NCBI GenBank assembly: GCA_038496445.1
Contig: JALMLS010000635.1
Coordinates: forward strand, 58,755-122,754
Length of the DNA stretch: 64,000 nt
Origin: Trichosphaerium sp. ATCC 40318
Taxonomy: Eukaryota > Protista > Tubulinea
Reading direction: 5' to 3'
The notes under the pieces: generated by a model
Database searches by the model: none
Seen by the model: only the letters and a program-made list of their open reading frames with translations
Told to the model about the DNA's origin: nothing
Program-made: the position numbers and the translations under genes
Shown: positions 23,680 through 64,000 of the stretch, piece by piece
Layout of the letters: each line of letters begins with the position of its first letter
Numbering within the stretch: position 1 is the stretch's first letter

Positions 23680-24819
23680 ATGAGCAACTCGGTATCACTA
23701 GATTCTGCGCCTACAGAGGTCCTAAGCTGTATTCTAAGCTTTTTGAATACAAACGATGATCTTTTGTCTGCAGCGCAGTGTAATGTCTTGTTTTCAGATA
23801 TAATACACTCTATAATAGGATACAAACATGTATACATTACAAACAAGCGAGCAAAGTCAATAGCAAAGCATAAAGGAATCATCAAAAGATCAACTCTTCA
23901 TTTCATTGGTCGTAATAAAAAAACCTACTGGAACAATCTTCGCGTCTTTGCTGGTGCACAAAATGTGTCACTCACAAAGTTCCCGTATATAAGTGAAGAA
24001 GGGATTAAAGGCTTTGCTGGCGTCAATTACATTAATTTACGAGGATGTGACAATGTAACAGATGACAGTGTTAGTGCATTAGCAGGTGTACAGGAAATAT
24101 TATTGGATTACACTAGTGTAGGTGATAATGGTCTCAAAGCACTTGCTGGTGTATACAAGATTACTTTAAGGAGTTGTACCAATATTACAGACGAAGGTGT
24201 TCGTGCATTAGCAGGCGTACATGATATTAATCTTTATGAATGTCCAAGAGTGACAGATGAAGGAATTAAAGCACTGAGTGGTGTACACACAATCGGTATA
24301 GCTAAGAACAGAAACATTAGTGATGCTGGTATTCAAGCTCTTTCAGGTGTTTATGATATTAATCTGAATCAAAGCAGGCGTTCAGTAACTGTAGCAGCCT
24401 ATAAAGCTATCGCTGGTGTTCACACTATAAAATTATCTTTTTCATACGTGACAGATGAATGTCTTCAATATCTTGCTGGAGTTCACACTATTGATTTATC
24501 GTATACTTCTGTTAGTGATATTGGTGTCAAAGCGCTTGCTGGTGTTCATACAATCAACCTGACAAGTAACAAGTATTTGACAGATGAAGGTGTGATTGCG
24601 CTTGCAGGAGTTACAACTATTCGATTAGGACACTGTAAAAAAATCACTGATGTGGGTGTCAAAGCACTTGTTGGTGTTGAGACTATTGTAGTGAATGGAT
24701 GTCCTCTTGTTACTGCTACAGGGTTACTTACTCTTGGGCATGCTGAAATTTTTGCGGATAAACCGGTCTTCAAAGAGTTGGCTTCAATGAAAAAGCAAAA
24801 GCGTAAAAACAGACGTTAA
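23680..24819 (+). CDS. Intronless F-box/LRR-repeat protein
   Basis: N-terminal F-box (SAPTEVLSCILSFL) followed by about ten 21-22 aa repeats LAGVHTINL..C..ITDEGVKA and a basic C-terminal tail. Confidence 0.88.
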   Translation: MSNSVSLDSAPTEVLSCILSFLNTNDDLLSAAQCNVLFSDIIHSIIGYKHVYITNKRAKSIAKHKGIIKRSTLHFIGRNKKTYWNNLRVFAGAQNVSLTKFPYISEEGIKGFAGVNYINLRGCDNVTDDSVSALAGVQEILLDYTSVGDNGLKALAGVYKITLRSCTNITDEGVRALAGVHDINLYECPRVTDEGIKALSGVHTIGIAKNRNISDAGIQALSGVYDINLNQSRRSVTVAAYKAIAGVHTIKLSFSYVTDECLQYLAGVHTIDLSYTSVSDIGVKALAGVHTINLTSNKYLTDEGVIALAGVTTIRLGHCKKITDVGVKALVGVETIVVNGCPLVTATGLLTLGHAEIFADKPVFKELASMKKQKRKNRR

Positions 24820-42189: not shown

Positions 42190-44770
42190 ATGAGAAACGC
42201 ATATGCATGTATTTTTGTTGTAATATGTATTATAGTATCTATTGTAGCTCAGTCTCGAGCATCTCAGTTCATTGGTTTTAGCTCAGAAACTTCAAGAGAC
42301 GAAGATAAACTAGGACTTACTTTGTGGATGTCTGATGACGATCTCTTAACTTGTACGCACTATTGTACGCCCTAAGGCAAAATTATTGATACCTGTAAGA
42401 TACATCGGTAGGATACTTTCAGAATGAACCGAAGCTGGATTCATTTTCATGTACGGAACTAACATCTACTTCATTTCAACTTTCTTCCTTTTTTTTTTTG
42501 TTACAGTTCATAACTTCTTGTTTGTAGTTGCTTCTAAAGAATGCTCTTACTTTGTTGTTGTTGAAAAAGATTCTTTGGAAGTTTATGACATTAGTGGGAA
42601 CCAGCTATGTACCGCTCAATTACCGTATGAGTACTCTGTAGGAGCTTTTTCAAGCGATTATAATTTTGTTCTTCATTCCAACAAAATGAAACAACTTGAT
42701 CAGTACTCACTCGATTTAAATGGTGACTGCGTTTCAAAACGTGAACAGTCATGTTACATCAATATCATCGACTCTTTAATTGCCAGTACGTACAACTAAC
42801 AGCTTTTTTTTTTTTTCTCCCTCTAAAGTAGAATCACGTGATAAATTTTTTCTTCTTCGTTTCGTAATTTTTTTTGATAGTTGAAGTTGATGGAGTTTCA
42901 ACGTTTTTGTCAACCTACAAAAACAACAAAACCACAATAGCCTATTTTCCAACAGAATTGATATCATCTGGCGATGAATGCTACCTTGACACCAATACAA
43001 TCAAAACAATGACTTTGTTCGAACGATACATGAACGTACTAATAACAAAGGATGAGTCAGATCTATTGATAAAGAATAGTTCATCTCGTTCAGTGCATCT
43101 ATTACACAAATATTCAAGTAAGTGTTTTTTGACATTTAAAGGTATTGGAAAGTAAGCTAACATTGCCAAGGTAACGTACAGTTGCTTAGAGAAACCTTTT
43201 TAAGTGGAATCCACTCTTGCTCGGGAAACTTAGTAAAACGGCAAATACCAACAACGCCACCTCCGCCAACACCACCACCAACAACAGATCCTCCAACACC
43301 ACCACCATCAACACCTCCGCCAACACCACCGCCAACAACAGATCCTCCACCTCCGCCAACACCACCGCCAACACCAGATCCTCCACCTCCGCCAACACCA
43401 CCGCCAACACCAGATCCTCCACCTCCGCCAACACCACCACCAACAACAGATTCTCCAACACCACCACCATCAACACCTCCGCCAACAACAGATCCTCCAC
43501 CTCCGCCAACACCACCGCCAACAACAGATCCTCCACCTCCGCCAACACCACCGCCAACAACAGATCCTCCACCTCCGCCAACACCACCACCAACAACAGA
43601 TCCTCCACCTCCGCCAACACCACCGCCAACAACAGATCCTCCAACACCACCAGAACCAACAACACTTCCTCCAACCACACTACCTCCTCCATCAACAGAA
43701 CCAACAACACTACCTCCAACAACAGAGCCTCCAACGCCACCAGAACCAACAACACTTCCTCCAACAACACTACCTCCTCCAACAACAGAACCGCCAGCTA
43801 CTATACCACTTCGAATAACACCACGCTTTGATTGCATTTCAGACAACCTTGACGGAACCTTCACTGCACATTTAGGGTGGACAACAAATACTGTACAGCC
43901 ATTTTATTGAACTTAGTACTAACTTACCTTAGGCACCTGTAACTTTGATTCAAGGACCCACAAACTTGATGAGCCCAACCGGATTCACTACTGTTCCTGA
44001 AACGTTTGGTGCAACTCCTCCGTTTTACCCTGCACCTGGAGGGTTTGATTTTACATTTTCTGGTGAAAGCACGTTCTGGTCATTGGGAGCACGTGACAAA
44101 ATTAAATCAGCAGTTATATTTGCTAATACTTATGCTAGAATAGTACAGTTGTATTTGACGCATCCGACCCAGACTCATTATGTCCAGAATCAAGTACAAG
44201 CACACCAGGTATTTAGATGATATTAACATATTACTCTAGGCAGTGTAGCCATTGGTATTGATGCTCTATTTCCAGCATTAGATGAAATTGTACAAGCTGT
44301 TGCAGCAGCTATACTAGAAGCTCTGAATTTGTCCTTCGGAGATGTAGTGATTACCCAAGAGCCAGATACAAATTTAAAGAGGCAGCTAGGAACCAGAGTA
44401 GTCGTCACAGTAAACTCAAACGGTGGTATGCCAAAAAACGTTCAACTACTTTAATATATTAATATAAAACCTCGCTCCACTCTAACACTGCTTTAGGAGG
44501 AACAATGACCATACAAGAAATTGTGGGATCATTTGTAAGTGATGATGAAGCCAAAATGCAAGTCATTCAGAGTCTAGCTGAAGACAACATTGTTGTAACG
44601 GTACAGGGTTTTAACTATTCAAAAGAACAAAGTAGTTTTTAGCTAAACTATGTTATAGGCAGACCCAACAACTGTAGCTCCTCAACAAGTGATTGTGGAA
44701 CCTCCCGCTTACTTGAACGGAAGAAGTAGATGTATAAGAAGACTCAGTAGTACTGCTATGGTTCCGTAAT
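42190..44770 (+). CDS. Secreted protein with Pro/Thr-rich repeat linker and an extracellular beta-domain (3' end uncertain)
   Basis: Signal peptide MRNAYACIFVVICIIVSIVA; 200+ aa TPPPTTDPPPPP tract; domain FDCISDNLDGTFTAHLGW...PETF...FTFSGESTFWSLG. Confidence 0.7.
43250..43800 (+). repeat. Coding tandem repeat (36-bp unit encoding TPPPTTDPPPPP, plus PEPTTLPPTT variants)
   Basis: Repeated acaacagatcctccacctccgccaacaccaccgcca. This explains the spurious ORFs in the other frames. Confidence 0.95.
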
Positions 44771-45166
44771 GCCGGCGGACACCGCGATAGTAATATGTAG
44801 AAAATTTAACCTCTATGCAATAAATGTGTTCACCACCAATATTTGGCTAAGCGCCATCTCCACTGTGTTGATGTTATTATTAAACTTAAAATCCAGATTT
44901 GGTAATATTTAGTTACTTGGGTTTGTTATAGAATATCCCTTAATGTGTAGTTATTCAACGGCGTTCAGAGTACTCTGCTTTGCTTATCGTTCAGTACATA
45001 GTGATACAACCTTACATAATAGACGGCAAATAATAGTATAAAACTCAACAATGGAGAGTAAAGGGCACTTGCTTAATAATAAAATGTATCGTTTTTGTTG
45101 AATTCTATTTTTAGCAACCAATTATTTCTAGTCAACAATTTATTACGTAACGGGGAAGCACCTTGG

Positions 45167-45921
45167 ATGACTGAATATAAGATAGTTGTTATTGGCGATG
45201 GTGGTGTAGGTAAATCAGCACTTACGATACAACTTTGTCAAAACCACTTTATTGATGAATACGACCCTACTATGGAAGATTCGTAAGCGTTTTAATCAAT
45301 TAAAAACACTATTACGCAGTTTACTTAACTCTTTGTTCAACGCGTTATAACCCTTATGTAGGTATCGCAAACGATGTATTGTAGATGAAGAGACCCTTTT
45401 CTTGGATATTCTTGATACAGCGGGAAAAGAGTACTCTTCATTGCGTGATCAAGTAAGGCTTTGTCTGCTGTCGTGCATAACTAACTTATTTGTTAATGTA
45501 CAGTACATGAGAGCAAGTGATGGGTACTTCCTTGTTTACGCTATTACAAGCCGTACATCTTTTGAGGAACTACCAGCTTTCTGTGACCAAGTTAGAAGGT
45601 AACAGTTGATATGTTGACAATCCAATTTTCGCATTATTTTATCAAAATGGTTTGTTGATTCATTTTAGGGTCAAGGATCTAGATTATGTCCCTTCAGTAA
45701 TAGTTGGAAATAAAGTTGATTTAGAAGAACAGAGACAAGTTACTAAAGAAGAAGGAGAAGAGATTGGAAAGCATTACAGCATTCCTTTTTTTGAGACATC
45801 AGCTAAAACACGTGAAAATGTTGAAGAAGCTTTTTATCAACTTGTACGAGAGATAAGGAAGGACCAAGATTTAGGTTTACCAAAACCTATTAAACAAAAG
45901 AGACGTTGCGCTATGATGTAA
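45167..45921 (+). CDS. ras: Ras GTPase paralog 1 (switch II DTAGK-EY; CaaX CAMM)
   Basis: [47 protein letters not shown]; three introns. Confidence 0.93.
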
Positions 45922-46390
45922 GAACAACCAGATAGAGGGTTAAGTAGCTCTTCAGGAAGGCGGCCAAAGAGTCATAATTTTTCATAGCAATATCCAAATG
46001 TACAACATACAAATAGTTGAACATGGTACAATCAATACTTTACTTAAAGAGCTATTACAACAAAACTATACCACTGCAAGTAGTGTTTTTAAAATTAAAA
46101 GAATTGATAACATAGACATTTGTGGAATGTTAAAAACAAACATCTTAAGAAGTGATAAGGAATGGAATTAAAAGTTTGAATGCTAAAAATAAACACCTGG
46201 TTAGTGCGCTTTGTGTAACTGTTTTTATGTAACACCAATACTCAATTATTGTACAACTTGTAAAACACCTCAAATACCTTTATGTTCATGGCAGTGACAG
46301 AAACCTGTTGAAACCCTGTTGATGTCAGACAATAAACACCGAAAAACTAAAAACCTTTTCTGAGTACATACATAGGAAACTGTACTATTT

Positions 46391-46520
46391 AATCAACAGC
46401 ACAAGATAACCAATACCAGCAAAACCCAAATTAGCCACTACCCTTGATTTAGTCTAATCAATCAACAGCGTACTTGATAACCAAGACCAGCGAAGTGCAA
46501 GCGAGCCACTACCCCTGAGT
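46391..46520. repeat. Two-copy ~70-bp imperfect direct repeat
   Basis: aatcaacagc...gataaccaa(t/g)accagc...agccactaccc(t/c)tga occurs twice. Confidence 0.7.
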
Positions 46521-46988
46521 TATCTAGCCACAACCTTGCTCTGGTAGCAAGGTTTGATATTTAATAAACCACACGTTTTCTTCGGTTGGGAAGTGTACTA
46601 AGGTGCTTTAACTGTTAAATTACTGCCCTTAAGTATAACATTGTAGTCATTGCGTAATTGCCTCTTGCTGTAGTTACACCTCTAGGTTTTTCGGTTGTTG
46701 ACTTTGTACATTAAGTCACCAATCACCGTAAACCTGGTTTGTAGCCATAATAACAGATAAGGGTGTTTCAGATTTGGCTGGTGTACACAATTGACCTTTC
46801 AGAATGTGGGTGTATCACTGGAGAATGTATGAAGAGGCCAGATAGAGTGGATTCTTCATCATCCTGACATTTCTAATAAAATGTATCGTGTTTGTTGAAT
46901 TCTATTTTTATCAACCAATTATTTCTAGTGTAGTTAAGTAAGTACAACAATAACAGCAGTTCGTAGCGTAACGGGGGAAGCACCTTGG

Positions 46989-47750
46989 ATGATTGAATAT
47001 AAGATAGTTGTTATTGGCGATGGTGGTGTCGGTAAATCTGCACTTTCAATCCAACTTTGTCAAAACCACTTTACTGATGAATACGACCCTACCGTGGAAG
47101 ATTCGTAAGCATTTTTAATCAATTAAAAACACTTTTACGCATTTTACTTTACTCTTTGTTCAAACGCCTTATAACGCTTATGTAGGTATCGTAAACAATG
47201 TATTGTAGATGATGAGACCCTTCTATTGGATATTCTTGATACAGCAGAAAGAGAAGAGTACGTAATGAGCAATCAAGTAAGCACTCTGTCAGCTGCCATG
47301 TGTAACTAACTTATTCGTTACCGCACAGTACGTGAGAACAGGTGATGGATACTTACTTGTTTACGCTATTACAAGCCGCACATCTTTTGAGGAACTACCA
47401 GCTTTTTGTGACCAAGTTAGAAGGTACGGAACACTTGACAACTTGATAATCTAAGTTTCACATTATTTTATCAAAATGGTTTGTTGATTCATTTTAGGGT
47501 CAAGGATCTAGATTATGTTCCTTCAGTAATAGTTGGGAATAAAGTTGATTTAGAAGAACAGAGACAAGTTACTAAAGAAGAAGGAGAAGAGCTTGGAAAG
47601 CATCACGGATTTCCTTTTTTTGAGACATCAGCTAAAACACGTGAAAATGTCGAGGAAGCGTTTTATCAACTTGTACGAGAGATAAGGAAGGACCGAGATT
47701 CAGGTTTACCAAAACCTTTTAAACAAAAGGCACTTTGCACTATGATGTAA
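46989..47750 (+). CDS. ras: Ras GTPase paralog 2 (DTAEREEY; CaaX CTMM)
   Basis: [38 protein letters not shown]; same three intron positions, frame intact. Confidence 0.9.
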
Positions 47751-47851
47751 GAACAATCTTGGTAGAGGGTTAAGTAGCCCTTCAGGAAGATGGACAAAGA
47801 GCCACAATTTTTCAAAGCAATATCCAAATCATCAAACAACAACAACATACA

Positions 47852-48074
47852 ATGCAAATCTTTGTAAAGACTCTCACAGGCAAGACAATCACTCTAGAGG
47901 TTGAGCAATCTGATACCATCGACAACATTAAATAAAAGATTCAAGATAAAGAAGGTATTCCTCCAGATCAACAACGGCTTATCTTCGTTGGTAAACAACT
48001 AGAAGATGGTTGCACATTCAATATCCAAAAGGACCACTCTGCATCTAGTCCTTCGGCTTTGTGGAGGTTGTTAA
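47852..48074 (+). pseudogene. Ubiquitin pseudogene (intronless)
   Basis: [52 protein letters not shown], then deletions/frameshift, ending [11 protein letters not shown]. Confidence 0.93.
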
Positions 48075-48495
48075 TATAGCCACTAGTAGGCTCCTTTGTA
48101 AATAAAAACAGTTTGTACAGCCTATGAATTGCCGTTTAATGTAAGGTATGTTTGTTATCACAACATTTTATCGGTCACCATGTGGTACGTACATCTATAC
48201 GCACGAAGCATGAGATACAACTAAATGACGCCCTTGAACGACTTCTTTGTACGTACGTAGTAAACGTCTGTTCGTAACTAGCATGCAGTAATTGAGCTTC
48301 ACAGAGATGTTACAAAGCTTTATATTATAATATACGTCATCCATTTCAGCAACAATTTGACAATTTATTGTACTGTGAAGACCAACATCCAAACAGTTTT
48401 TTTTGTTGAATTCTATTTTTATCATCAACCAATTCTAATGTGGTCAAGTGGTACAACAATAACAGCAATTTATAACGTAACGGGGGGTCAATTTA

Positions 48496-49266
48496 ATGTC
48501 TGTATACAAGATACTAGTTCTTGGAAGCATTGGTGTTGGGAAATCAGCTCTCACAATACAATTCATAAGCGGCAACTTTGTTGATGACTATGACCCTACC
48601 CTAGAAGATTCGTAAGCGTTTTAATCAATTAAAAACACTTTTTACGTACTTTTACGCTTTTCTTGTCTTTTTTGTTAAAAACGCGTCATAACGCTTATGT
48701 AGGTATCGCAAACGATGCAGTGTAGACGATGAGACTCTTGTATTGGATATTCTTGATACAGCAGGCGGAGATGACTTCTCTGCATTGCGCGATCAAGTAA
48801 GCACTCTGTCAGCTGCCATAACTTATTCGTTAACGTACAGTTCATGAGAACAGGTGAAGGATTTTTACTTGTTTATGCTATTACAAGCCGCACATCTTTT
48901 GAGGAACTACCAGCTTTCTATGACCAAGTTAGAAGGTACGGAACACTTGACAACTTGATAATCCAATTTTCACATTATTTTATCAAAAATGGTTTGTTGA
49001 TTCATTTTAGGATGAAGGATCTAGATTATGTTCCTTCAGTAATAGTTGGGAATAAAGTCGATTTAGAAGAACAGAGACAAGTTACTAAAGAAGAAGGAGA
49101 AGAGCTTGGAAAGCAGTATTACTCCATACCTTTTTATGAGACATCAGCTAAAACACGTGAAAATGTTGAAGAAGCTTTTTATCAACTTGTACGAGAGATA
49201 AGGAAGAATCGAGATCCAGTTACATCTAAACCTATTAAACAAAAGAGACGTTGCACTATGATGTAA
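48496..49266 (+). CDS. ras: Ras GTPase paralog 3, divergent (P-loop [16 protein letters not shown]; CaaX CTMM)
   Basis: [39 protein letters not shown]; same introns. Confidence 0.9.
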
Positions 49267-49795
49267 AAAAACCACTTGCTAGAGGGCTAAGAAAGTTGTT
49301 GGAATGTAACAAAAGACACAAGAAATAGTTTCCAAAACACTCCATAATCTGTCATAAGTGAGCGATTGGTTGTAAGAAGAAAACTTCAAAAGTTCCAAAT
49401 TAGTCAACTTGCACACTTTTCAACTGTTTGCTGGCAGGCAAAATTGGTGATGAATAGTGAACGAATTTTTTTACTTCATGAATACTGGCTGTTTGACAAC
49501 AATAATTAATTGTTTTATCACTGACGGTTGGAACTACAAAGCTGAATTTGAGCTTGATAGATCAGTTATGAAGATTTGTAAATTTGTACTCTGTCTACCT
49601 AGTACTGTGATTGATGGTCCAAAGTTTGATTACCCAATTTCATTTGGTTGACAGATAGAGTAGATTCTTCGTCATCTACACTGACATTTCTAATAATAAA
49701 ATGCATTGAATTCTATTTTTATCAACCAATTATTTCTAATGCAGTTAGGTACAACAATAACAGCAGTTTGTAACATAACGGGGGAAGCACCTTGG

Positions 49796-50560
49796 ATGGC
49801 TGAATATAAGATAGTTGTTATTGGCGATGGTGGTGTCGGTAAATCAGCACTTACGATACAACTTTGTCAAAACCACTTCTTTGATGAATACGACCCTACC
49901 ATAGAAGATTCGTAAGCGTTTTTAATCAATTAAAAACACTTTTACGCATTTTACTTTACTCTTTATTCAAACGCGTTATAACGCTTATGTAGGTATCGTA
50001 AACAATGCATTGTAGATGATGAGACGCTTATCTTGGATATTCTTGATACAGCAGGCAGAGAAGAGTACTCTGCAATGCGTGATCAAGTAAGCACTTTGTT
50101 TGCTGCCGTGCATAACTAACTTATTCGTTAACGTACAGTACATAAGAACAGGTGAAGGATTTTTACTTGTTTACGCTATTACAAGCCGTACATCTTTTGA
50201 GGAACTACCAGCTTTCTATGACCAAGTTAGAAGGTACGGAACACTTGGCAAGTTGACAATCCAATTTTCCCATTATTTTATCAAAATGGTTTGTTGATTC
50301 ATTTTAGGATGAAGGATCTAGATTATATCCCTTCAGTAATAGTTGGGAATAAAGTCGATTTAGAAGAAGAGAGACAAGTTACTAAAGAAGAAGGAGAAGA
50401 GCTTGGAAAGCATTACAGCATTCCTTTTTTTGAGACATCAGCTAAAACACGTGAAAATGTTGAAGAAGCTTTTTATCAACTTGTACGAGAGATAAGGAAG
50501 GACCGAGATTCAAGTTTACCAAAACCTTTTAAACGAAAGAGACGTTGCGCTATGATGTAA
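49796..50560 (+). CDS. ras: Ras GTPase paralog 4 (DTAGREEY; CaaX CAMM)
   Basis: [39 protein letters not shown]. Confidence 0.93.
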
Positions 50561-51000
50561 AACAACCTTGGTAGAGGGTTAAGTAGCCCTTCCGGAAGAT
50601 GGACAAAGAGTCACCATTTTTCAAAGCAATATCCAAATGTACAATAAACAAATACTTGTATTTCGGTCTCGTAGTTAATAGGTGCACTTCTTCATGGACT
50701 TGTATTTGTGACACTTTCTTTTACATATATAGAAACTTGTATATGTGCATAGGAGCCTATGTATAAGCGCCCTCACAATCTCCTTGAAAACAGCAAAATA
50801 TTAGGATCTTAAGAACAAGGACCCTACTTAGTATGAAAGATACTGTTTTGTCAAAAAGATATTGCCTAGCCACTGGCGCCATTAATAGCTTATGGCTTGT
50901 GGTTTCATATTATGATCTGGTTAAGTTGTTGTTGATGAAGATATTACCTTGACAGTGAAAAGTATGCTTGAAGAAGGAGTATTTATTGAGTAAAGTCGTA

Positions 51001-53080
51001 TTACAAGACAAGAGCAATGAGAGAAATAACAACTCCCAACACAACTGTTTTAATACAAGCCACTGATGGTTCATTTGTCTGAGCTTGAGTAGGTTCTATA
51101 GGTGCAATAGGTTCCTGAGGCGCAATAGGTACTTGCGGTGCAATTGGTGAAGCAGGAGCTTCTGGGAAACATCCAACAGGTTCGCCGCCTATGATTTCCC
51201 AACTAAAAACAGCGTTTTCAATGGCTTCGCTAACATTTGCAGCTGTAACAATCATCGTATATTGTTGCCCTTGAACAAGAAACGCAGCTATTGGTATATC
51301 TTCACCAGCTTTTACAAATGAACCAGACGAACAATCAGGTGGGACAACGCTAAACAAATAAACAGTCAACGTCACTGTGAGTGCTTAAGCCAAACATACT
51401 CAGGTGCAATAGACTCGTTGAAAAGAGTTACAACTGGTTTACTGAAACCAATGGTACAATTTTGAAGGGGGTTTAAATCTCCAGAGGCTGAGAATATGTA
51501 ATAACCAGTAGTAGATACATCGATTGGCTAGTGAAATACATGAGTTTAAACAACGGCTAAACCGCCAAAAAATAATTAGAGTTCTCACTTACCACTGCGT
51601 TCCAGCTGCTCTTGGGTCCATCATTATTGCACTCGGTAGTTATTATGCTTCTGTTGTTAGTTTTAACTCTAGAATATTTCTAATGTAAAGAACAATAAGC
51701 TAAGGAGGGAGAAATAGCACTCTAAATTCTATCTCGAATGTTGTCTTCTTTCTTATTTTTTTCGTGGACGTACTTCAAAACCAAGTTTTGGGCCCATACA
51801 AGGTAAACAGACACAAGTAGCTATTGGGGTATATTCTTGTATTGAAACGCCAGCGAGAACTACATTCAAATAACAGTGAGAAACAAAGCAAACAAAACAG
51901 CTGAACATACATTCCTTGAATTCTATACTTGGCAAACCGAACCTCGATATACTAAAAACCCTTCCAAAAACAAATGTGTACTCAACACCAGCTTTTAAGA
52001 GCCATACAACATCACCAAGATTAGTGTTTATATCCATAGTTTGAGTTCCACAGTTGTCTCTAAATGACAAGCATGGTCCAGTGTAGTTCGATAAAACTCT
52101 TACTCCCACGTTGGCAACATCTCCAAGGGACAGTGTGTAGAATCTGGCACTAGCGAAAGATTAGTGTATAGAACCTAAATATAGATTCAACGTACGTATT
52201 ATTCTTAGCTACCATTCCAGAAAACTTGATTGTGTAGTTCACAGTTTTAGAAGGTGTAAATTTAAATGTAGTTGAAGGAATTGACTCTAAAGATATCCTG
52301 AATTCACGGGCAGTACTGTTTGTATTCAATTCAATCAGTGTTTGGTATTCGGGTTGTTCAGTCAACTCAACAACAAACACTCCGTCAAAATAAGGTTTGA
52401 ATGAAACTGGTTCATTATCATCAATACTTAGGTCGTACGTTACAATACCAACGACTTCACCAGCTGGAAGCCATATTGCGTTATTTGTGGTAGCAGCTAA
52501 CAGTAGTGTGAGATGTTGACTAACGTCTTGAGAACAAAACAGTACCCGGATTTTTAGTGGAATTGCCAGCACTATTCCCAGAGAAAATGGCCCATAATAG
52601 GTTGTCACAAGGATTAGCACAGTCAAAACTGTTAGAGTATAAACCGATATTGATGTATGGAATGAGATTAACTGAGGTGTGCGCTGTAGAATAAAATAAG
52701 AACAAATTTAGGTTTGTATGAACTACGTACCTTGCATGTAGTAAAAACCTGCTTTTGGGAGTGACATATTAAACGATACCCAACGCGCTGTCTTGGACCC
52801 ACTAAATAGTATTTACGAGAGGCACGTGATGATTGGGGAAAACTAAAAAGATTGTACATACGCTGAACATTTGGGTATGTCATATATGCTTTCAAATTGG
52901 TACTGGGGAGGTGTACTGCAAGTCCCTGCTGAATCTTTTCTAAAAGAAACTGGGTTTAGTTTTCTATCTCAACCTAGCTATTGAGCTTTACCCGCAAGAC
53001 ACGTCAGATAGTTGGCCTGTAAAACGCATGGTAGCAGACCATGCTAGGACTATGAATAGACAAAGGAAGAAGAGATGCAT
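51001..53080 (-). CDS. Putative GPI-anchored/surface protein, multi-exon
   Basis: Signal peptide MHLFFLCLFIVLAWSA; Cys-containing beta-rich ectodomain; PIAPQ linker repeats; terminal hydrophobic stretch VVLGVVISLIALVL*. Confidence 0.7.
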
Positions 53081-54154
53081 TATCAAGGTGAGATAACAGT
53101 TTTTGAACACAATTTCCCGGTTATTTGCGGGGCTGTTGGGGATAACACCCGTCTTTGTGTACAAAAAGATCAACAGTATCATTACTACATAAAAATCACT
53201 TCTTTGGTCTAGACAAGGATCACGTGGCATAGGGAATTGTTGGGAAAAAGTTGGTTAAGATTTTTGGGAGCAAGTTTGCTACGCTTGTTGTTCTTAACCT
53301 GTTGCGCTAGCAACTGAATGGGAATACCCTCAAATCTTGTAATGGGTAAACCCAAATAACACAAGGGTGGTCATCTTTCTTAGAGTACGAGTTTCTCCGA
53401 CTAACTTCCTAAGCGAATATGGGTTCGTCAAAATAGAAAACCGATTGCTAACACGATTAAAAAGTTCAAAACAAGTCTCTTCTCAAAACCGTATCATTTG
53501 TCCATCATTAGACAATAACCTGCCATTTCGGGTGAGGTGTTTTACAAGTATTCCAACTGAGCGTTCCGTAGTCGTTTTGGTGCAGTAACTGCATCATTGA
53601 TACAGCACTGTACTTTTTTGGAGAATCCCGTGTCACGTGATTTCACATGCTGTATGTGCCATAGTTGGCTTTAACAGTAACACGTGGGTGAATCTCAAAG
53701 GACTTAGATCAGCTATCTGGCGAAAAAGCACGCTTTACCTAAACGGATTAAACGTTGGTAACTATCGCGCACGATAACACGCTCGGTTGTGATTGTACCA
53801 TTGGTATCGTCTCGTGTAACTTTTAAAGAAAGCGAGCACGCAATACTTGCAACAATGTCCAAAAACCATGTAAAACATTGTAAAAGTCGCTGTGGTGGCT
53901 ACAACCGTCACCGATAATTTGTTGCTTGCAAACTCCACTTCATAAATTGTTCAAACAACACTCAGACGCTATAGGGGCTCTATACACGCGCATGAACGGC
54001 ATAACACGTTTTACAATGTTTAATGATCGCTAACGCGTATTCTTTAGTTCGCGTTACTTCTCAAACGCTTGTGCGAGGCCAGGCAAATTAACGTAAACCT
54101 AGATTAAGCCTACTTCAGCGTCAAGTTATTTTTTAGTTGAACGAATAACTCAGT

Positions 54155-57100
54155 ATGGAGGTTGATCAGGCGTTAAAGGATATTTTTCTAGTATCTCTTG
54201 ACGCAAGTACAACAGGAAAATACACGTATTATGCCGAGTTGGCAACATCTATTGCCTTGAGCGATTCATTAGATGTTATGGATACTACAGATACAAGTGA
54301 CCAGCCCAGCTTTTTTTTAGAGCAAGGTATTTGTTTTAACGCGTTTTTGAAACGAAAAAAAACTAAATCAGTTAAAGTGCCCCAAACGGTACTCCAAAGA
54401 CACCCACAAGCTACTGGTTGGTCTTCAACAGCGCCCATTGTTAATTTTGACGCTATTCTATCGTCTGTGTCTGAAAAGTGCGTAAACAAATTATTTGTTA
54501 ATACTGACAGCTTTGACATAGTAACACGAGGCCGTTGATACTCAATACAAGCCATACACCTGCTATATTGCGTTGTTGTGCGAACTATCCACAAGGAGGT
54601 TTCTCTTGGTGTGTAGGCGCGTATAACCGTGCCAAGCAATACCAAAAGGTGAAATTAGAGCTTCAGAAAAAAACTTTTTAGCTGAAAACCGTCTTTTTTG
54701 TTAGAAATGGCCTAAAGTCGTTGATGAAGTACTCCCTCATATTATGAATCATATAAAGCAATTATTAATATTTGAACAACACTCACAAATGGATAACACT
54801 GTACGCTTTTTTTTTTTATTTTGTGCAAAGCGAGAATTTACTTTGTTGGTATTGTATGTCGTCTAATTCTTCCCAAGAATGATCCCGTTGGTAACTCACA
54901 ACTTCTTAATCATTTTGCGAATGTACCTGATGCACTAGTCGCTGAGCTAGCGCAAGTCTGTGCGCGTGAAGAGGCTGTAGTTGGTAGGATTTTTTTTGCC
55001 TTTTTAGTTGTACCGTTATCACCTCTTACCAATTTCTGTAGTTTTCTCTCCACTTGTTTCACAAGTCGTCGTTGCAATGAAACATGTTGTAAAACAAGGT
55101 GATGTATTCTCAAGTGCGTACCAATTGACTGTTATCTATAACTTGCTAATTTTGGTTTTGTTTTTTTTAGCGGATATTTTCGAGCTTTTCAAGAAACTTA
55201 AAGCGCTTATGAACTATCCACCGTTACTGGAGCTATTTGCATGCATGCTAGGGTGAGTAAGAGCGCTACATTCATCTTCAAAAAAAAAAAGACAAAAACT
55301 CATGTAGCACGTGTATTTACACGTGTTTTTATGTTTTGTTTTTTTTTCGAGCGTATAAAATGCTAATAAGAGTATTCAGTTTGGAGCTTGAGAAATCACA
55401 ACAAGCTACTGCACGTTCAATGGAAAATGATTCAATAATTGGACCTTTCTTGCAACTGTCTTCAATGAATAGCCCTACCAATCACTTTAATAGTGATCAA
55501 ATCAGGAATTACCCTAGGTGCGGTACTGCTGCTCTTCATCAACATCAAGATAAATACAGAAAAGTATTTACAGGCATGCAGGTATAATGACACAAAAGCT
55601 TTAAGATTTATTTTTTATGTTCTTATTTTTTTTTTTCATAGCGAGAGATGCACTTTATTTTAAAGAAGCTATGTGTATTTAAGTCTCCTAATGTACAAGC
55701 AAGAAAAATATTACTCATGTGGTTCGCTAAAACAGCACAACTTAATGAAATGCGCACTACATTAGCAGCAAATGATCCATTATACTACGAGGTATGTTTA
55801 TTATTTTTTCGAGAAAAACAAACTTGTTGCATGTGTTGTCTTCTTAAAAAAACCTGTAGTTGTCTCTCATGGCGTCATCAGATGCATTTTCAGTAAATCT
55901 TACTGCTATCATGCTTCTATTTTGCAAGCCCTTTCTGTACCCATCAACTGACAAGATCCGATTAATCAATCCACATTACGCCAGAGTGAGCAAACAAAAT
56001 CGTTATTTTGTTGTATGTGTTGAGCTCTCTAACAATTTCTTCTCCTTTAGTATAATCAATTGATAGATTACACTAAACAAACAACATTACTTACATCAAC
56101 ATACCCCGATGTTGCTGTGGATACAAAGATAAAAATGGGAACATTCAACTTTATTACAGATATTTTCTTTACAACGTTTCACATGATATTCGTTGGGTAC
56201 CTTCTAGTTCTTTATTTTCTTTTTACGGCTTATAGTTTGTAATAATATTATCGTAGAATAATGCCTATTGTTGAGCGTCATTCTAAGCATCTAACAGCTT
56301 TATTGAATACGAAACAAAAAGCTGCAAATCTTCAAAAACTTTATGGTTAGTAACTTTTTTTTTCGTTCCGATTGCTTAATCTTACACTACATTAAAGGAG
56401 CTGACTGGCATCAAACAAAAGATGGAAAGGCTCTTGATAAAGCATTAACTAAGCTATTTGCTTTAGTAGATGCATGGGATACTCACGCACTTGCACCCGA
56501 GTTGGTGAACAGTTGCTTGAAGTACCTTCATTTTTTATACTATGCCTAACTAATTTACATTTTAGCTTCTGCTATACTGCTATGCATTTCTTAGTAAAAA
56601 CCTACGAGGAATACCAACCTAAGGGACAAGCTGAAGCAGTATTTTCTGCATTCCCAGAGTACTTTATTCGTGTACCACTTGTACGTGTTTACAAAATCCG
56701 ATCGAAGCAAGTTTACGCTAAATTATTCCTAGCAATATGTTGCGTTTGTAGCACGTCAAAAACCGGCTATACTGAATACTCTAAGACTTGGACTTGTTAT
56801 TGATTTTATTGTTATATTTATGAATGCAACACATATTGTAAAGAGCCCTATCGTTAGGTATGTTCAAGAACAAACTGGAAAGAAAAAAATACACTTTTTT
56901 GGTTCTTTTTTTTTTATGTTTATGACTACTCTTAGGGCTAAATTTGCTACCTTACTTGCTGAGTTACAATACCAAAGTAAGAGAAAGACACCAGGCCCAA
57001 AGTACCAACAAAATTCTTTTTCATTCAACTCCACACAACGTAAGATTAGAACGATTATAAAAATGATATTTATATATTTAACTTTTTTTTTTTCCAAAAC

Positions 57101-59921
57101 AGCATCTTTGGGTCCTACGTCTGCTTTCCAGTCTCTGTACAAAAATTTCTTCATAAGCAACAAAAGATGTCAAAAAGATCTTGTGCCTGGACTTATGAAT
57201 ACATTCATCAACCTAGATGTAGTAGAGGTATAATTTGAAAAAAAAAGCACATACAACTTAACAGTATAAGAATTGACTTAACTAAAAAACAGGGCCTGGA
57301 CGTTGATAAAGAAAAGTATGATAAATACGCTGTTAGAAGGAACATAGCAATGCTCATTACTGATCTATGGGGCGTACCAATGTATAAAAAGATTATAACT
57401 CAGGTATGCACGAGTAGTTGGAACAAAGTCCGCCATTAATGTTTGTTTTAACAACTAGTTACTGTTAAATGACAAGTCAGAAGAAGCTCAACAGTTCCTT
57501 TCTACAATATTGAACGATGCTATCATGCTACTCAATGATGCGTTGGGACGATTAGTAGATATTAAACAGCTTCAAATGGCTATGAAAGACGTTGCTACGT
57601 GGAATGCTCAACCTGCCGAAACGTACAGCGTTCTTTGCTTGAACTGGAAACTCATATTTTTATAGTAAAAAGCGCCGTGAGGGATACTTTGGCGTACAAG
57701 AAAGGACTGTCAAGGTATTCTTTTTTTTCGCGTAGATAGCAACAGCTTACTTGGTTTCTTAATTTTTCTGCTAGGGATTCATGTCACTTGCAATTGCTAT
57801 TTTAGAGTTACTACAGCATTTATCGAGCACAAGGACTCTAGCATCAAAGTTTATGTCAAACAAACTTACTGCGTTCAAAACAGTATCTATGCTCACCCGC
57901 TTCTATGAGCAGATAGTAGGGCCTAAATTCAACGATCTTAATGTTGATAACCCTCAAAAATATAACTTTAAGCCACAGGTACGTACCGTAATATCTTAAG
58001 TCACTTTTACTAAACTATGACTTCTTTATAGGATCTTTTGAAGCGCATCATAGCGATTACAATGGGTTTTGCTCATGAGAAAATATTTGTTCATATGTTT
58101 GCAGAAGATATGGATTACGCTCATGAGTACATGAACAAAGGTAGGCGCATTATTGTTGATTATGATCTAAATCTGACTTAACCAAGTTATTGTTTAAGTT
58201 ACTTGTTTGTTTTAAGACTGACTTTGATCTTTTAGCATTATATGTTGTAAACAAACACTCCCTGCTAACGAAAGAAGCCATTGGAAACTTTAGAAAATTT
58301 GTTTTTGATGTATTAGCTGTCTTTGAAGCAGAACAAGCCAAACGTACTCAAATTTATTTTGCTTTTGATGATTGTTCCTAATTATCGCCTTAGTACCTCA
58401 AATTGATGAAATTGAGGACCCTATGCTTGTAGAATTAAGTCCTGAGGTCCAGGCAGAAAAAGATCGCGGTACGCTTCTCACAGAGGGCAAACAATTGGTG
58501 TTTTTTTTTTTGCTTACTAATGAAGAGTTCCACATGTTTTCTTTTTCTGTTATTCTTTGTGCTAATTTTTATTGTTTTGTAGAGGTTGATGAAGCTTATG
58601 TGGAGACCTTGCAAGATCTTGTATTCGATTCTGTTGAGATGTTTGATGATAATGGAGAATACAGGCATAGATTTGCTAAAAATATTAAAGCATCAGAAAA
58701 TTCATTCAATAAACAAAAAATAGAACGTTTAACAAAGGTACCACTTAAAATATGTTCACAAAATTAGCAACTTGAAATCCATAATATTATTTTTTCAGCA
58801 CGACACGTGCAAGTCTTCAACGTTGGTTTTCAAAAAAGAATTCCTTGTTTCTTCTTTTTTTCTATTTTTTTTTTTCTGGTTGTTGTGTACTCACTATCAT
58901 CTTTTAGGAATGTAAGATGCTTTCTGGTAGTTTACCTATAAACAGAGGTTCTTCTGTATTCGTAAGAACGGACGACGAGAGAATTGATGTTATGAAGGTA
59001 TGCCAACTTTCTTGTAAAACAATTCTGATTTTTTTCTTACTTTTTTTTTTTTCAAACAGGCGATCATCACAGGACCAAAAGGGACACCTTATGGATGCGG
59101 ATGTTTTCTATTCGATATATTCTTTCCACCAACATATCCTAACGACCCACCCCTTGTAAATATAACTGTACGTCCTTCCTTGTTGTCAAACTTTTTTTTT
59201 GTTTTGTCCAAAAAGAGCTACAAACTAACTAAACTTAGACCACTGGTAATGGGACAGTTCGTTATAATCCAAATCTATATAGTGACGGTAAAGTATGCTT
59301 GTCATTATTGGGTACATGGCATGGTGACAAATCATCCAAATGGAACTCTGTATCATCAACACTATACCAAGTACGATCCCTTTTAAAATATTTTTTTATC
59401 TCGAAATACTTCCCTCTTATTTTTGTCTCTTTCTTTGTAATACGCGCCTGTAATCAACTTCTTTTATTATATTCTTAGTGATACTTGTCTTAACGATTTT
59501 TTTACAGGTGCTTGTGAGTATCCAAGGGCTTATACTAATTGAAGAGCCTTACTTTAATGAACCTTCATATGAAGCACAGAGAAACACAAAAGAAGGTTCT
59601 TTACGTTCAAAGGAGTATAACGAACAACTCCAATATGATACAATACGATGGGCAATGGTAGATAGTATTAAAAACCCTCCAGAAGGTACGAAACAAAAGA
59701 AGAGAAACGTCACATTCAATGGCGTTCTTTAACATTTTTTTTTTTTGTTAGGATTCGAGGAAGTCATACAAAATCATTTCCTCATTGATGGTGATGATAT
59801 TCTTCGTCAATGCGAACGTTGGATTTCAGAAGCATCTGATACTATGAAACCGAAGCTAAAGCGTGTTGTTGGAGAATTTAAGAGAGCATTAGCACAATTA
59901 AAAGCGAAAAGTAACCAGTAA
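54155..59921 (+). CDS. Chimeric ubiquitination enzyme: Ufd2/UBE4 core fused to a BIRC6-like UBC (E2) domain, lacking a U-box
   Basis: Ufd2 core motifs [83 protein letters not shown] motifs [72 protein letters not shown]. Junction introns are phase-consistent. Confidence 0.88.
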
Positions 59922-60474
59922 AAAAGGAAAAAAAAAAGAATAAATATGAGGAGTTTAAAAAAAGTTTTCACTATTCAAGTAGGACTTGTGCTTTGACCAG
60001 GTCTTATTGTTAAGAGCACGTGACTATGGAATAAGCCGGAAGCTCTAGACCCAACAACGTTTGAACAAAGGTAAAATGACAACTAAGGAGCGCACGTAAT
60101 AGTCCAATCACAGAAGTGACAAACTTGTTTCTCTGCCTAATGAGATATGCGGCGTGTAAAGATTTAGCGTCAGAAACCACAAGCCTTACGCTATTAATGA
60201 AGCTTGTTTTCCACTGGCTTTAGGCAATATCTGACAAAACAGTATCTTTCATACTAAGTAGGGGCGCTTATACATAGGCTCCTATGTACATCTACAAGTT
60301 TCTGTATAATTTAAAAGAAAGTGTCACAAATACAAGTCCATGACAAAATGCACCTATTAACTACGAGACCGAAATACAAGTATTTGTTTATTGTACATTT
60401 GGATGTTGCTTTGAAAAATGGTGGCTCTTTGTCCACCTTCCTGAAGAGCTACTTAACCCTCTAACAAGATTGTT

Positions 60475-61239
60475 TTACATCATAGTGCAACGTCTCTTTC
60501 GTTTAAAAGGTTTTGGTAAACCTGAATCTCGGTCCTTCCTTATCTCTCGTACAAGTTGATAAAAAGCTTCTTCAACATTTTCACGTGTTTTAGCTGATGT
60601 CTCAAAAAAAGGAATGCTGTAATGCTTTCCAAGCTCTTCTCCTTCTTCTTTAGTAACTACTCTTTGTTCTTCTAAATCGACTTTATTCCCAACTATTACT
60701 GAAGGGACATAATCTAGATCCTTCATCCTAAAATGAATCAACAAACCTTTTTTGATAAAATAATGCGAAAATTGGATTGTCAACTTGCCAAGTGTTCTGT
60801 ACCTTCTAATTTGGTCATAGAAAGCTGGTAGTTCCTCAAAAGATGTGCGGCTTGTAATAGCGTAAACAAGTAAATATCCTTGCCCTGTTCTCATGTACTG
60901 TACGTTAACAAATAAGTTAGTTACACATGGTAGCTGGCAAAGTGCTTACTTGATCACGCATTACATTGTACTCTTCTCTGCCTGCTGTATCAAGAATATC
61001 CAAGAGAAGCGTCTCATCATCTACAATACATCGTTTGCGATACCTACATAAGGTTATAAGGCGTTTGAACAAAGAGTAAAGTAAAATGCGTAAAAGTGTT
61101 TTTAATTGATTAAAAACGCTTACGAATCTTCTATGGTAGGGTCGTATTCATCAACAAAGTGGTTTTGAACAAGTTGTATTGTAAGTGCTGATTTACCGAC
61201 ACCACCATCGCCAATAACAACTATTTTATATTCAGTCAT
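60475..61239 (-). CDS. ras: Ras GTPase paralog 5 (DTAGREEY; CaaX CTMM)
   Basis: [53 protein letters not shown]; three introns. Confidence 0.93.
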
Positions 61240-61510
61240 CCAAGGTGCTTCCCCGTTATGTTACAAACTGCTGCTATTGTTGTACTTGACTTCATTAGAA
61301 TGATAAAAATAGAATTCAATGCATTTTATTATTAGAAATTTCAGTAGATGACGAAGAATCTACCCTATCTGTCAACCAAATGAGAGTACAACTAATCTAT
61401 CAAGCTCAAATTCAGCTTTGTAGTTCCAACCGTCAGTGATAAAACAGTTAATTATTGTTGTCAAACAGCCAGTATTCATGAAGTAAAAAAATTCGTTCAC
61501 TATTCATCAC

Positions 61511-61877
61511 CATAGTGCAACGTCTCATTTGTTTAATAGGTTTAGATGTAGCTGGATCTCAGTGCTTCCTTATCTCTCGTACAAGTTGATAAAAAGCTTC
61601 TTCAACATTTTCACGTGTTTTAGCTGATGTCTCATAAAAAGGAATGGAGTAATACTGCTTTCCCAGCTCTTTTCCTTCTTCTTTATAACTTGTCTCTGTT
61701 CTACTAAATCAACTTTATTCCCAACTATTACTGAAGGAACAGAATCTAGATCCTTCATCCTAAAATGAATCAACAAACCATTTTGATAAAATAATGGGAA
61801 AATTGGATTGTCAACTTATCAAGTGTTCCGTAATATAGAGAAGTCATCTCTGGCTGTATCAAAAATATCCAATACAA
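61511..61877 (-). pseudogene. Ras pseudogene (copy of paralog 3), internally deleted and interrupted by a TIR element
   Basis: Shares [11 protein letters not shown] with Ras3. Exon 3 is deleted, there is a 1-nt frameshift (gttataaagaag vs gttactaaagaag), the 3' end is deleted after ctatg, and exon 2 breaks at 61877. Confidence 0.88.
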
Positions 61878-64000
61878 CAGGTCTGAAAATTATCATGGTA
61901 TAATACCATATTTTATGGTATAATCACCTTTTATGGTACAAGCTCAGTATAATCCATAATTATACCATATAATTATACCATAAAATATGGTATAATACCA
62001 TGTTTTTTGGACAAATGGTATAACAGCCATTATACCATGTTTATACCATATCTCAATTTATAGAATATAATTATACCATAAAACATGGTACTATACCATG
62101 GTATTATACTGCATTTTAAAGTATATTATACCATGCATTATACCATATAATTATACCATAAAACACAGTATTATACCATGGTATTATACCACATTTTACA
62201 GTATATTATACCATGCATTATACCATATAATTATACCATAAACATGGTACTATACCATGGTATTATACTGCATTTTAAAGTATATTATACCACGCATTAT
62301 ACCATATAATTATACCATAAAACACAGTATTATACCATGGTATTATACCACATTTTACAGTATATTATACCATGCATTATACCATATAATTATACCATAA
62401 AACACAGTATTATATCATGGTATTATACTGTATTTTACAGTATTGTATACCGTGCATTATACCATATAATTATACCATAAAATGTGGTATTATACCGTGG
62501 TATTATACTGTATAAGTATAAGTTAGTCAAAGCTCACTTGGTCTGCACTTGATTTAATAGCATATGGACCTACACAAACGCCATACCACACAATGCTTTG
62601 ACAGTAGCCGTTATTGAACATAATTGGCATATAAATGTGTGAAAAACAGTTTTAAGAGAGAAATCTGGTAACGCACCCCAATTACAGGCGTTTTAGGGAT
62701 AAATTGGCCAACTTTCTCCGATTAATGGTATTTGAGGAAGAAACCACTCCGCGTACCCCATGTTAGAACGCTACAGTGGTATACACACCAAAAACGTGTT
62801 TAGCGCTCGAAAAATGCCCATTCGCAAAAAACCTCCAATTGGAGGTTTTTTCCGGCTCTCATTTTTTTCTCCCCTCCATACGCATTTTTACACTCAATCA
62901 ACGCCATACAGCCTCATTTACCAAATCAAGAGCAAAATTATTTATTTTTTTTTGACATTCTTGATATATGCCCCAATGTGTGTTAAACCACGCGATTAGT
63001 GATATAAGGCAAAGTTGTTTCAGAGCCTACCCATTTTTCGAGTTTTTTGGTTTTTTTTGGATTTTTTTGATTTTTTTGGTTTTTTCCTACCAAACGCCCG
63101 CATTTGCCGGAACAGATAGCATTTAGGCTCTGCACCCATGCGTTGACCTTACGAGTGATATTGTAAATTAATTGGCTAAGCCAGGGCATAAAACTAAGTT
63201 TTGACCAGTTTATTGCCCACACAACACAAGGTACGCTAGAAAGTAGTTGTTTTAAAGCTGTTTGCCATAGGTTTTACAGGCTTAATAGGTGATATAAAAA
63301 ACAAAACGTGTTAGCCGCCCAACCAGGTACTATTCCGCTAGAACTCGTTTCCGATGAGGTTGGTAGCTATTTTCATTTCTTTGTTTTAGTCTTGGTTTGG
63401 CTTCACCGTGCAGGTCATTTGTTACTCTCAGCGCTGCCATAAAACAACAATTTTTGTACGACTATTTATTTTGTGTACAAGAAACCAAGCCAGCGCTAAC
63501 TCTTCTTTTAGGTTTCATGCTATATCCATTCAATGCACTTACAGCAAGTACGATCTGTTCTTTTAAGGTTATTTGATCACTGCAAAAAAGGACATGGGCA
63601 AAACTAAAAGTCACGGATGTAAACAAAAAAAAGATGTATTAATAAATGTGTTTTTATTTTTAGAACAGTTTTTACACAGTATAATACACCTGGTTTTGTG
63701 GTATAATCTACCAAGTTTTAAGGTATAATATACCAGGCTTTATGGTATTATACTGTGTTTTATACCATGTTTTATGGTAGAATTATACCATATAATGCAT
63801 TTTTTCAGGTGAAAAAATATGGTATAAATTCGCACTTTCTACTGTATATTTATGGTATAATTTGGCTGTTTCATGGTATAAATCCTTTGATTTATGGTAT
63901 ATTATACTGGAATTTGTGGTATAAAATTGGAATCAATGGTATAATTATACCACAAATTCATGGTATCTACCATAAAAACAGCTTGAGAATTTTAGACCTG
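61878..64000. mobile_element. Non-autonomous TIR DNA transposon (hAT/foldback-like) with repetitive subterminal arms
   Basis: Left end caggtctgaaaattatcatg vs reverse complement of the right end caggtctaaaattctcaag. Both arms are packed with tataccat/atggtata motifs. It begins exactly where Ras exon 2 homology stops. No long ORF. Confidence 0.8.
62067..62510. repeat. 80-bp tandem repeat, ~5.5 copies with A/B alternating variants
   Basis: Unit ataattataccataaaacatggtactataccatggtattatactgcattttaaagtatattataccatgcattataccat at ~62067, 62147, 62227, 62306, 62386 and 62466 (partial). Confidence 0.92.

Follow-up and report, generated by a model that had tools for sequence, protein, structure and literature searches.

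ERas, the Rnd proteins and RhoH are atypical small GTPases that are presumed not to be regulated by cycling between GTPase-activating proteins (GAPs) and guanine nucleotide exchange factors (GEFs). Switch II is the main docking surface of the RasGAPs and of the Cdc25-type GEFs, as seen in the Ras-GAP and Ras-SOS structures. Constant activity without the catalytic glutamine (Gln61) is known among Ras-family GTPases, for example in kappaB-Ras (PMC12314375), and human NRAS Q61R is reported to hydrolyse GTP far more slowly than other mutants (PMC12116848). Here we describe a cluster of Ras genes without Gln61 from the marine amoeba Trichosphaerium sp. ATCC 40318, found in a 64,000-nucleotide stretch of contig JALMLS010000635.1 (the window; positions are counted from its first letter). 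Five intact genes (Ras1 to Ras5) and one broken copy were identified there by motif scan, translations and explicit GT-AG models (Table 1). The reading we favour, with confidence a little beyond the halfway mark, is that these genes may encode slow-hydrolysing, membrane-bound Ras paralogues which are uncoupled from both GAPs and GEFs and regulated in some other way. The cluster is a new case, of independent origin, of an established kind, the atypical small GTPases without catalytic Gln, and not a new system.

Codon 61, read directly, specifies Arg (AGA) in Ras2, Ras4, Ras5 and the pseudogene, Lys (AAA) in Ras1 and Gly (GGA) in Ras3. The switch II strings given for Ras1-5 in an earlier sequence-only reading, as well as DTARDDF in the pseudogene, were recovered exactly by six-frame scan, translations and gene models. 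The pairing of Gln61 with Gly12 on which arginine-finger RasGAPs rely is absent (residue 61 is K, R, G, R and R in Ras1 to Ras5), and Ras3 additionally carries Ile at position 12, an oncogenic-type position. The single-codon deletions in the switch II of Ras1 and Ras2 are both in frame and differ from one another. Position and change are those of human RAS Q61R and Q61K, and in Ras4 and Ras5 switch II is otherwise Ras-like (DTAGREEY); in the amoeba, however, the change is germline, fixed and clade-wide and comes with other changes, and carrying the biochemical effect over to it is an extrapolation. Natural substitutions at 12 and/or 61, the mark of the atypical GTPase-deficient class, are present in the cluster, which shares with kappaB-Ras, ERas, Rnd1-3 and RhoH the natural loss of the catalytic Gln and/or Gly12 and a presumed regulation by means other than GAPs and GEFs. 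The amoeba genes have no orthologue among these proteins; they arose independently, apparently from Ras proper, within a single amoeba lineage and, unlike kappaB-Ras, they keep a membrane-targeting CaaX box.

With canonical Ras (amoebozoan RasG/RasD, human K-Ras4B) the cluster shares the Pfam Ras domain, YDPTxEDSY, NKxD, SAK and a polybasic tail with a farnesyl CaaX; its identity to amoebozoan Ras is 68-74%. The C-terminal halves match PF00071 at an E value of 1e-25 and exon 1 does so at 1e-9; in the PDB, Salpingoeca Ras and KRAS rank first. Motifs G1 (GxxxxGKS), G3 (DxxG), G4 (NKxD) and G5 (SAK) can be read in the models, with the exception of Ras2, which has DTAE for DTAG. The effector loop is YDPT(M/V/L/I)EDSY in all five copies, with position 36 as its sole variable site, and each protein ends in CAMM or CTMM preceded by a basic stretch. 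It had been claimed that the P-loop, NKxD, SAK and CaaX motifs were intact in the five complete copies; this stands for NKVD, ETSAK and CaaX, but the P-loop departs from the Ras consensus, reading GDGGVGKS in Ras1, Ras2, Ras4 and Ras5 and GSIGVGKS in Ras3, where canonical Ras has GGGG or GAGG. Asp11 of GDGGVGKS was considered as a defect and dismissed, as the same P-loop occurs in a Gln61-bearing Ras of another protist (P0170). Asp is also the norm at this position in Rho, Rab and Ran. The cluster further differs from canonical Ras in R/K/G at 61, in an unconstrained switch II with deletions and in forming a separate clade.

We infer for Ras1-5 a hydrolysis defect, independence from GAPs and GEFs, and effector binding. 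The proteins are predicted to bind GTP, sit on membranes and engage Ras effectors because the nucleotide-binding motifs, the effector loop YDPTxEDSY (Thr35) and the polybasic farnesylation tail are kept. By analogy with human Ras mutants, they would be very slow in GTP hydrolysis and unresponsive to arginine-finger RasGAPs. In the proposed sequence of events, the ancestor of the clade, a Ras proper, would have replaced its catalytic Gln61 by Arg; without GAP/GEF cycling, the switch II surface used by those regulators would lose constraint and drift, and control would then lie in the expression, turnover or location of the proteins, in the manner of Rnd, RhoH, ERas and kappaB-Ras.

The pattern of selection is consistent with this sequence of events. 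Whole-gene ratios of nonsynonymous to synonymous substitution rates (dN/dS; pairwise Nei-Gojobori, Ras1-5) range from 0.40 to 0.63, and the deeper pairs fall significantly short of 1 (binomial p 0.0006-0.01); dS is approximately equal to intron divergence. The corresponding ratio of proportions of differing sites (pN/pS) is approximately 0.1-0.5 in switch I and in residues 77-165, with occasional pairs higher, close to 1 in switch II (individual pairs 0.6-6.2) and 1 or more in the hypervariable tail. Fifteen of the 20 switch II positions vary among the five copies, whereas elsewhere in the G domain the figure is 33 of 146 (Fisher p = 7e-6); nonsynonymous and synonymous changes number 19:4 in switch II and 42:34 elsewhere in the domain (p = 0.03). 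In 121 canonical relatives, positions 12, 23, 60-65, 69, 71, 75 and 78 are 100% invariant; many of these vary among Ras1-5, including 60-65, 69, 71 and 75. Ras1-5 are maintained and not decaying, with purifying selection acting outside switch II.

The loss of Gln61 could also leave the proteins as normal switches, if a different GAP supplied the catalytic residue in trans through a RapGAP-type asparagine thumb or a dual finger. Rap, which has no catalytic Gln, uses asparagine-thumb GAPs (PMC12314375), and Rap1/Rap2 (Thr61, RapGAP) resemble the cluster in being Ras-family switches without Gln61. The case is best made for Ras3, as Rap-like residues (VLGS, QF, G26 and F64) are found in the N-terminal part of this copy and in its pseudogene, and Ras3 exon 1 is marginally more similar to Rap1 (51.8 bits) than to H/K-Ras (50.1 bits). 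However, no copy carries Thr61, residue 61 being R, K or G, and switch II is not conserved from copy to copy as it is in the Rap family; the cluster also appears to branch inside Ras, in a tree built of Ras-type sequences only. Moreover, very recent copies already differ by G60E and by two distinct one-codon deletions in switch II, the pN/pS of which is about 1, and residue 61 is still changing, from R to K and G within the cluster and with P in another paralogue. We thus regard an alternative GAP as unlikely. The sequence-only reading had left the choice between constitutively GTP-loaded Ras controlled by expression and an alternative GAP mechanism; although neither is provable from sequence, the first is favoured by the switch II ratio because an alternative GAP should still constrain switch II, and it is switch I and the core that are constrained.

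The absence of Gln61 is rare among relatives. Three word-index protein searches returned as nearest homologues mostly amoebozoan RasG/RasD-type proteins at 60-74% identity, amoebozoan Ras being closest to Ras1-5, and Gln61 is present in 215 of the 220 fetched nearest homologues with a readable switch II. The five exceptions are the near-twins P0001 and P0121, the singletons P0066 (Pro) and P0136 (His), and P0192 (G12C/Q61R; a metaclust entry). The best database match to the cluster is P0001, a transcript from MMETSP, a collection that includes the genus Trichosphaerium. Its last 49 residues are identical to those of Ras4, the final residues of P0121 nearly match Ras2 and, because of these matching C-termini, both transcripts should come from the same or a very close organism. 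The N-terminal two thirds of P0001 are strongly diverged, with GEPGVGKS (Pro12) and DTAGRGD (Arg61). In the tree, which contains no Rap or Ral outgroup, Ras1-5 group with P0001/P0121 (100/100 support) to the exclusion of 34 other Ras, nearly all of them canonical. The catalytic Gln is gone, as is Gly12 in Ras3 and P0001, and no constraint on switch II is measurable any longer. A search with P0066, aimed at a conserved Q61P Ras subfamily, gave canonical Ras only and no close relatives. Pattern scans of JGI metagenome contigs are weak negatives, having been run without a positive control: an 11-residue pattern for the R61 clade gave no matches, and LDTAGREEY gave eight, all of them non-Ras chance matches. 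Nothing specific was found in the literature on Trichosphaerium Ras or on natural Gln61-less (Arg61) Ras clades in Amoebozoa.

The simplest history of codon 61 is one ancestral change from Gln to Arg (AGA), followed by single-base steps to Lys in Ras1 and to Gly in Ras3. A single loss is indicated because AAA and GGA are each one base away from AGA and the dead duplicate of Ras3 still carries AGA. The earlier framing of the cluster as repeated natural Q61R/K/G events is not borne out, as the codon pattern fits one ancestral change in one young clade. This clade appears to have grown by tandem duplication (Ras1-Ras4), one inverted segmental duplication (Ras5 and the pseudogene) and gene conversion of the 3' halves. 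By blastn, 60173-61880 on the minus strand is an inverted segmental duplicate of the Ras3-Ras4 block at 48735-50906, with internal deletions and an identity of mostly 93-98%, falling to 80-84% at both ends. Within it, Ras5 is an intact duplicate of Ras4 (approximately 93% identity), and the pseudogene is a duplicate of Ras3 (approximately 94%) with lost exons, a frameshift and a stop. Its exon 1 is absent. Exon 2 survives as a remnant that reads DTA-RDDF, without the G60 codon; its end is deleted, as are intron 2 and exon 3. Exon 4 is shortened by a 1-nt deletion, interrupted by a CGA-to-TGA stop and devoid of the normal stop codon. Compared with the other copies, Ras3 has an old 5' part (dS 0.5-0.64 in exons 1-2) and a far more similar 3' part (dS 0.09-0.17 in exons 3-4), and the same step is seen in intron identities. 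This step indicates that the 3' halves were homogenised by gene conversion or that Ras3 is of recombinant origin. The same conversion process may fit the identical C-termini of P0001/P0121, which are very divergent elsewhere, with chimeric transcript assembly as an alternative.

This contrast between the two halves raises the possibility that switch II and position 61 are under positive selection, with variants or decoys that escape or bait putative enzymes attacking the catalytic Gln or switch II. The 19:4 ratio in switch II and the several pairs with pN/pS above 1, up to 6.2, point in this direction, and the effector-side half is diversified and the membrane-side half homogenised, which is the reverse of animal Ras isoforms. 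At these counts, however, the ratios are statistically indistinguishable from 1, and we consider such selection very improbable. The related proposal of farnesylated GTP-locked variants, with a fast-changing regulator/effector half and a converted membrane half, serving as toxin-resistant Ras or as decoys, is likewise a long shot.

Evidence for expression comes from the single public run that contained part of the stretch (X1), a set of 13 Mb of assembled contigs for which the RNA label is guessed, compared with positions 45000-50700. One X1 contig (record 5) runs from exon 2 through exon 3 into exon 4, with both joints precisely where the gene models place them (50086 to 48841/3; 48935 to 45669/70), and spliced mRNA is proven because it crosses them. 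Its mismatches, both those listed and their totals, fit Ras5 plus one synonymous difference, and on sequence record 5 is best described as an allele or near-twin of Ras5. RNA editing of codon 61 back to Gln was considered and is unlikely, as the mismatches comprise Ras5-versus-Ras4 differences and one synonymous site and leave no room for two changes in that codon, an argument that is indirect since codon 61 lies just inside the unlisted end zone of the contig. Another X1 contig (placed at 49914/45405-45425) has a Ras4-like exon 1 and an exon 2 with DTAGPEEFSCMRDS (Pro61), an expressed paralogue which the window does not encode. The clade without Gln61 therefore exceeds this cluster, because both this Pro61 paralogue and the Pro12/Arg61 transcripts P0001/P0121 exist outside the window.

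The same run contains the mRNA of a Ras with a canonical P-loop, seen as a loose end in which KLVIVGG is followed by GGVGK, and among the MMETSP transcripts one whose number neighbours that of P0001, P0123, has the GGGGVGKS and DTAGQEEY of canonical Ras and probably comes from the same organism as the cluster. Hence the amoeba probably also keeps ordinary Ras beside the Gln61-less clade. The sequence-only reading described a Ras family in which every copy had lost Gln61 and proposed to look for a Gln61 copy elsewhere in the organism. The loss holds for the cluster and for further expressed paralogues (R61 in P0001 and the Q61P contig), but the canonical transcript in the same run indicates that it probably does not extend to every Ras. 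The cluster cannot be taken as the organism's Ras family, given the GGGGVGKS Ras transcript; it is one lineage-specific clade with a separate, fully supported (100/100) position in the tree.

It is also conceivable that Ras1-5 are redundant duplicates in the course of turning into pseudogenes, the loss of Gln61 and the switch II damage being early decay. The dN/dS of 0.4-0.6 would agree with this, as that of canonical Ras is expected to be far lower. The sixth copy is dead, Ras2 has suffered more damage than the other four genes (G60E, R68S, D69N and a weakened polybasic tail), and Ras1-3 have no copy-specific RNA evidence in X1. Against this, at dS values as high as 0.6 none of the five frames and none of the 30 splice sites is broken, and coding indels are all (3/3) multiples of three. 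Outside switch II and the tail pN/pS stays at approximately 0.1-0.5, apart from the occasional higher pair, and nonsynonymous-to-synonymous ratios among copy-unique changes are 0.7-3.0, small counts that lie under the neutral value of 3.7. Ras5-like mRNA is spliced, the divergent paralogues P0001/P0121 are transcribed, and the truly dead copy shows the speed at which decay appears. Early decay of the cluster is therefore distinctly unlikely, although it may apply to single copies within it. The outcome that the sequence-only reading had set against itself, no expression together with neutral dN/dS, is excluded by dN/dS below 1, intact frames and splice sites and a spliced Ras5-like mRNA.

Several points weigh against our interpretation of Ras1-5 as slow-hydrolysing paralogues uncoupled from GAPs and GEFs. 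The hydrolysis defect would be carried over from human Ras at approximately 68-74% identity, and kappaB-Ras, Rap and Rheb hydrolyse GTP despite the absence of the catalytic Gln (PMC12314375), so that a 'locked on' state of Ras1-5 can only be conjectured. In X1, no contig could be assigned specifically to the 5' half of Ras1, Ras2 or Ras3; in a single set this small such an absence does not demonstrate silence, but some cluster copies may be silent. The Ras4-Ras5 pair by itself is not significantly below neutrality (p = 0.2), pairwise dN/dS is blurred by gene conversion, and a switch II ratio of about 1 fits relaxed constraint and diversifying selection alike and cannot separate the two.

The cluster represents a natural experiment on the most studied oncogenic position of Ras, in which Arg, Lys or Gly at residue 61 has been carried through several rounds of duplication. 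The constraint on switch II vanished after the loss of Gln61, whereas selection continued to act on the nucleotide pocket, effector loop and lipid anchor, a pattern which supports the view that the extreme conservation of switch II mostly serves GAP/GEF cycling and not effector binding. The copies are also ready natural variants for testing how much hydrolysis a Ras requires. The general picture of Ras signalling is unchanged, since Gln-less atypical GTPases had been described before and an ordinary Ras is probably present in the amoeba too.

The window is eukaryotic DNA with approximately 36% GC and short introns, and a six-frame motif scan places all Ras P-loops and DTA switch II motifs within 45.1-61.9 kb. 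Ras1-Ras4 lie head to tail on the plus strand, with Ras5 and the pseudogene on the minus strand. Each intact gene has four exons and three GT-AG introns at identical sites (within codon 39, phase 2; directly after codon 70, phase 0; within codon 102, phase 2) and an uninterrupted frame of 184-186 codons that terminates in CAMM or CTMM. Intron lengths in Ras1/2/3/4/5 are 79/81/91/81/80, 51/52/44/52/52 and 70/74/75/74/75 for introns 1, 2 and 3, and differ by non-multiples of three. An origin by retrocopying or viral capture is ruled out by the three introns at shared sites in all copies and a GC content like that of the surroundings.

Table 1. Ras genes and accompanying features of the window, with coordinates counted from its first letter.
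Feature	Position	Strand	Length and exons	Residue 61, motifs and remarks
Ras1	45167-45921	+	184 aa; exons 45167-45282, 45362-45452, 45504-45598, 45669-45921; GT-AG model	P-loop GDGGVGKS; codon 61 AAA (Lys) at 45426-45428; one-codon switch II deletion; CaaX CAMM
Ras2	46989-47750	+	184 aa; exons 46989-47104, 47186-47276, 47329-47423, 47498-47750	G60E; codon 61 AGA (Arg) at 47250-47252; one-codon switch II deletion; R68S; D69N; polybasic stretch weakened, C-terminus KQKALCTMM
Ras3	48496-49266	+	186 aa; exons 48496-48611, 48703-48796, 48841-48935, 49011-49266	P-loop GSIGVGKS (Gly12 to Ile); codon 61 GGA (Gly) at 48767-48769; DDF in switch II
Ras4	49796-50560	+	185 aa; exons 49796-49911, 49993-50086, 50139-50233, 50308-50560	GDGGVGKS; codon 61 AGA (Arg) at 50057-50059; C-terminus KRKRRCAMM
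Ras5	60475-61239	-	185 aa; exons 61124-61239, 60950-61043, 60803-60897, 60475-60727	GDGGVGKS; codon 61 AGA (Arg) at 60977-60979; inverted duplicate of Ras4
Ras pseudogene	61508-61880	-		Inverted duplicate of Ras3 (blastn and pairwise alignment to Ras3); codon 61 AGA at 61849-61851
Intron 3 of Ras3	48936-49010	+	75 nt	Open in frame
Intron 3 of Ras5	60728-60802	-	75 nt	Open in frame
Tandem repeat	62058-62510		80-bp unit, 5.7 copies	AT-rich; approximately 90% identity
Ubiquitin pseudogene	47852-48076	+		Internal stop after Lys27; degenerate C-terminal end
GC-skewed repeat	43157-43910			Just upstream of the Ras cluster
F-box-like/leucine-rich repeat frame	23680-24819	+	379 aa, intronless	Repeats of the 'LAGVHTI(N/D)L' type

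Open reading frames of 139-140 aa span intron 3 in both Ras3 and Ras5, and its retention would add 25 residues, a putative form of which there is no sign of use. The tandem repeat lies directly upstream of the pseudogene, at the site where its exon 1 would be expected. Between Ras2 and Ras3 there is a ubiquitin pseudogene; deep RNA at 47843-48118 was considered as a small RNA, but Rfam and tRNA scans of it were empty, and it is attributed to this pseudogene drawing ubiquitin mRNA contigs. The long repeat bordering the cluster would read as Pro/Thr-rich (mucin-like) on the plus strand and as Gly/Val-rich on the minus strand. Further away, an intronless open reading frame has an apparent N-terminal F-box-like segment followed by approximately 10 leucine-rich repeats.

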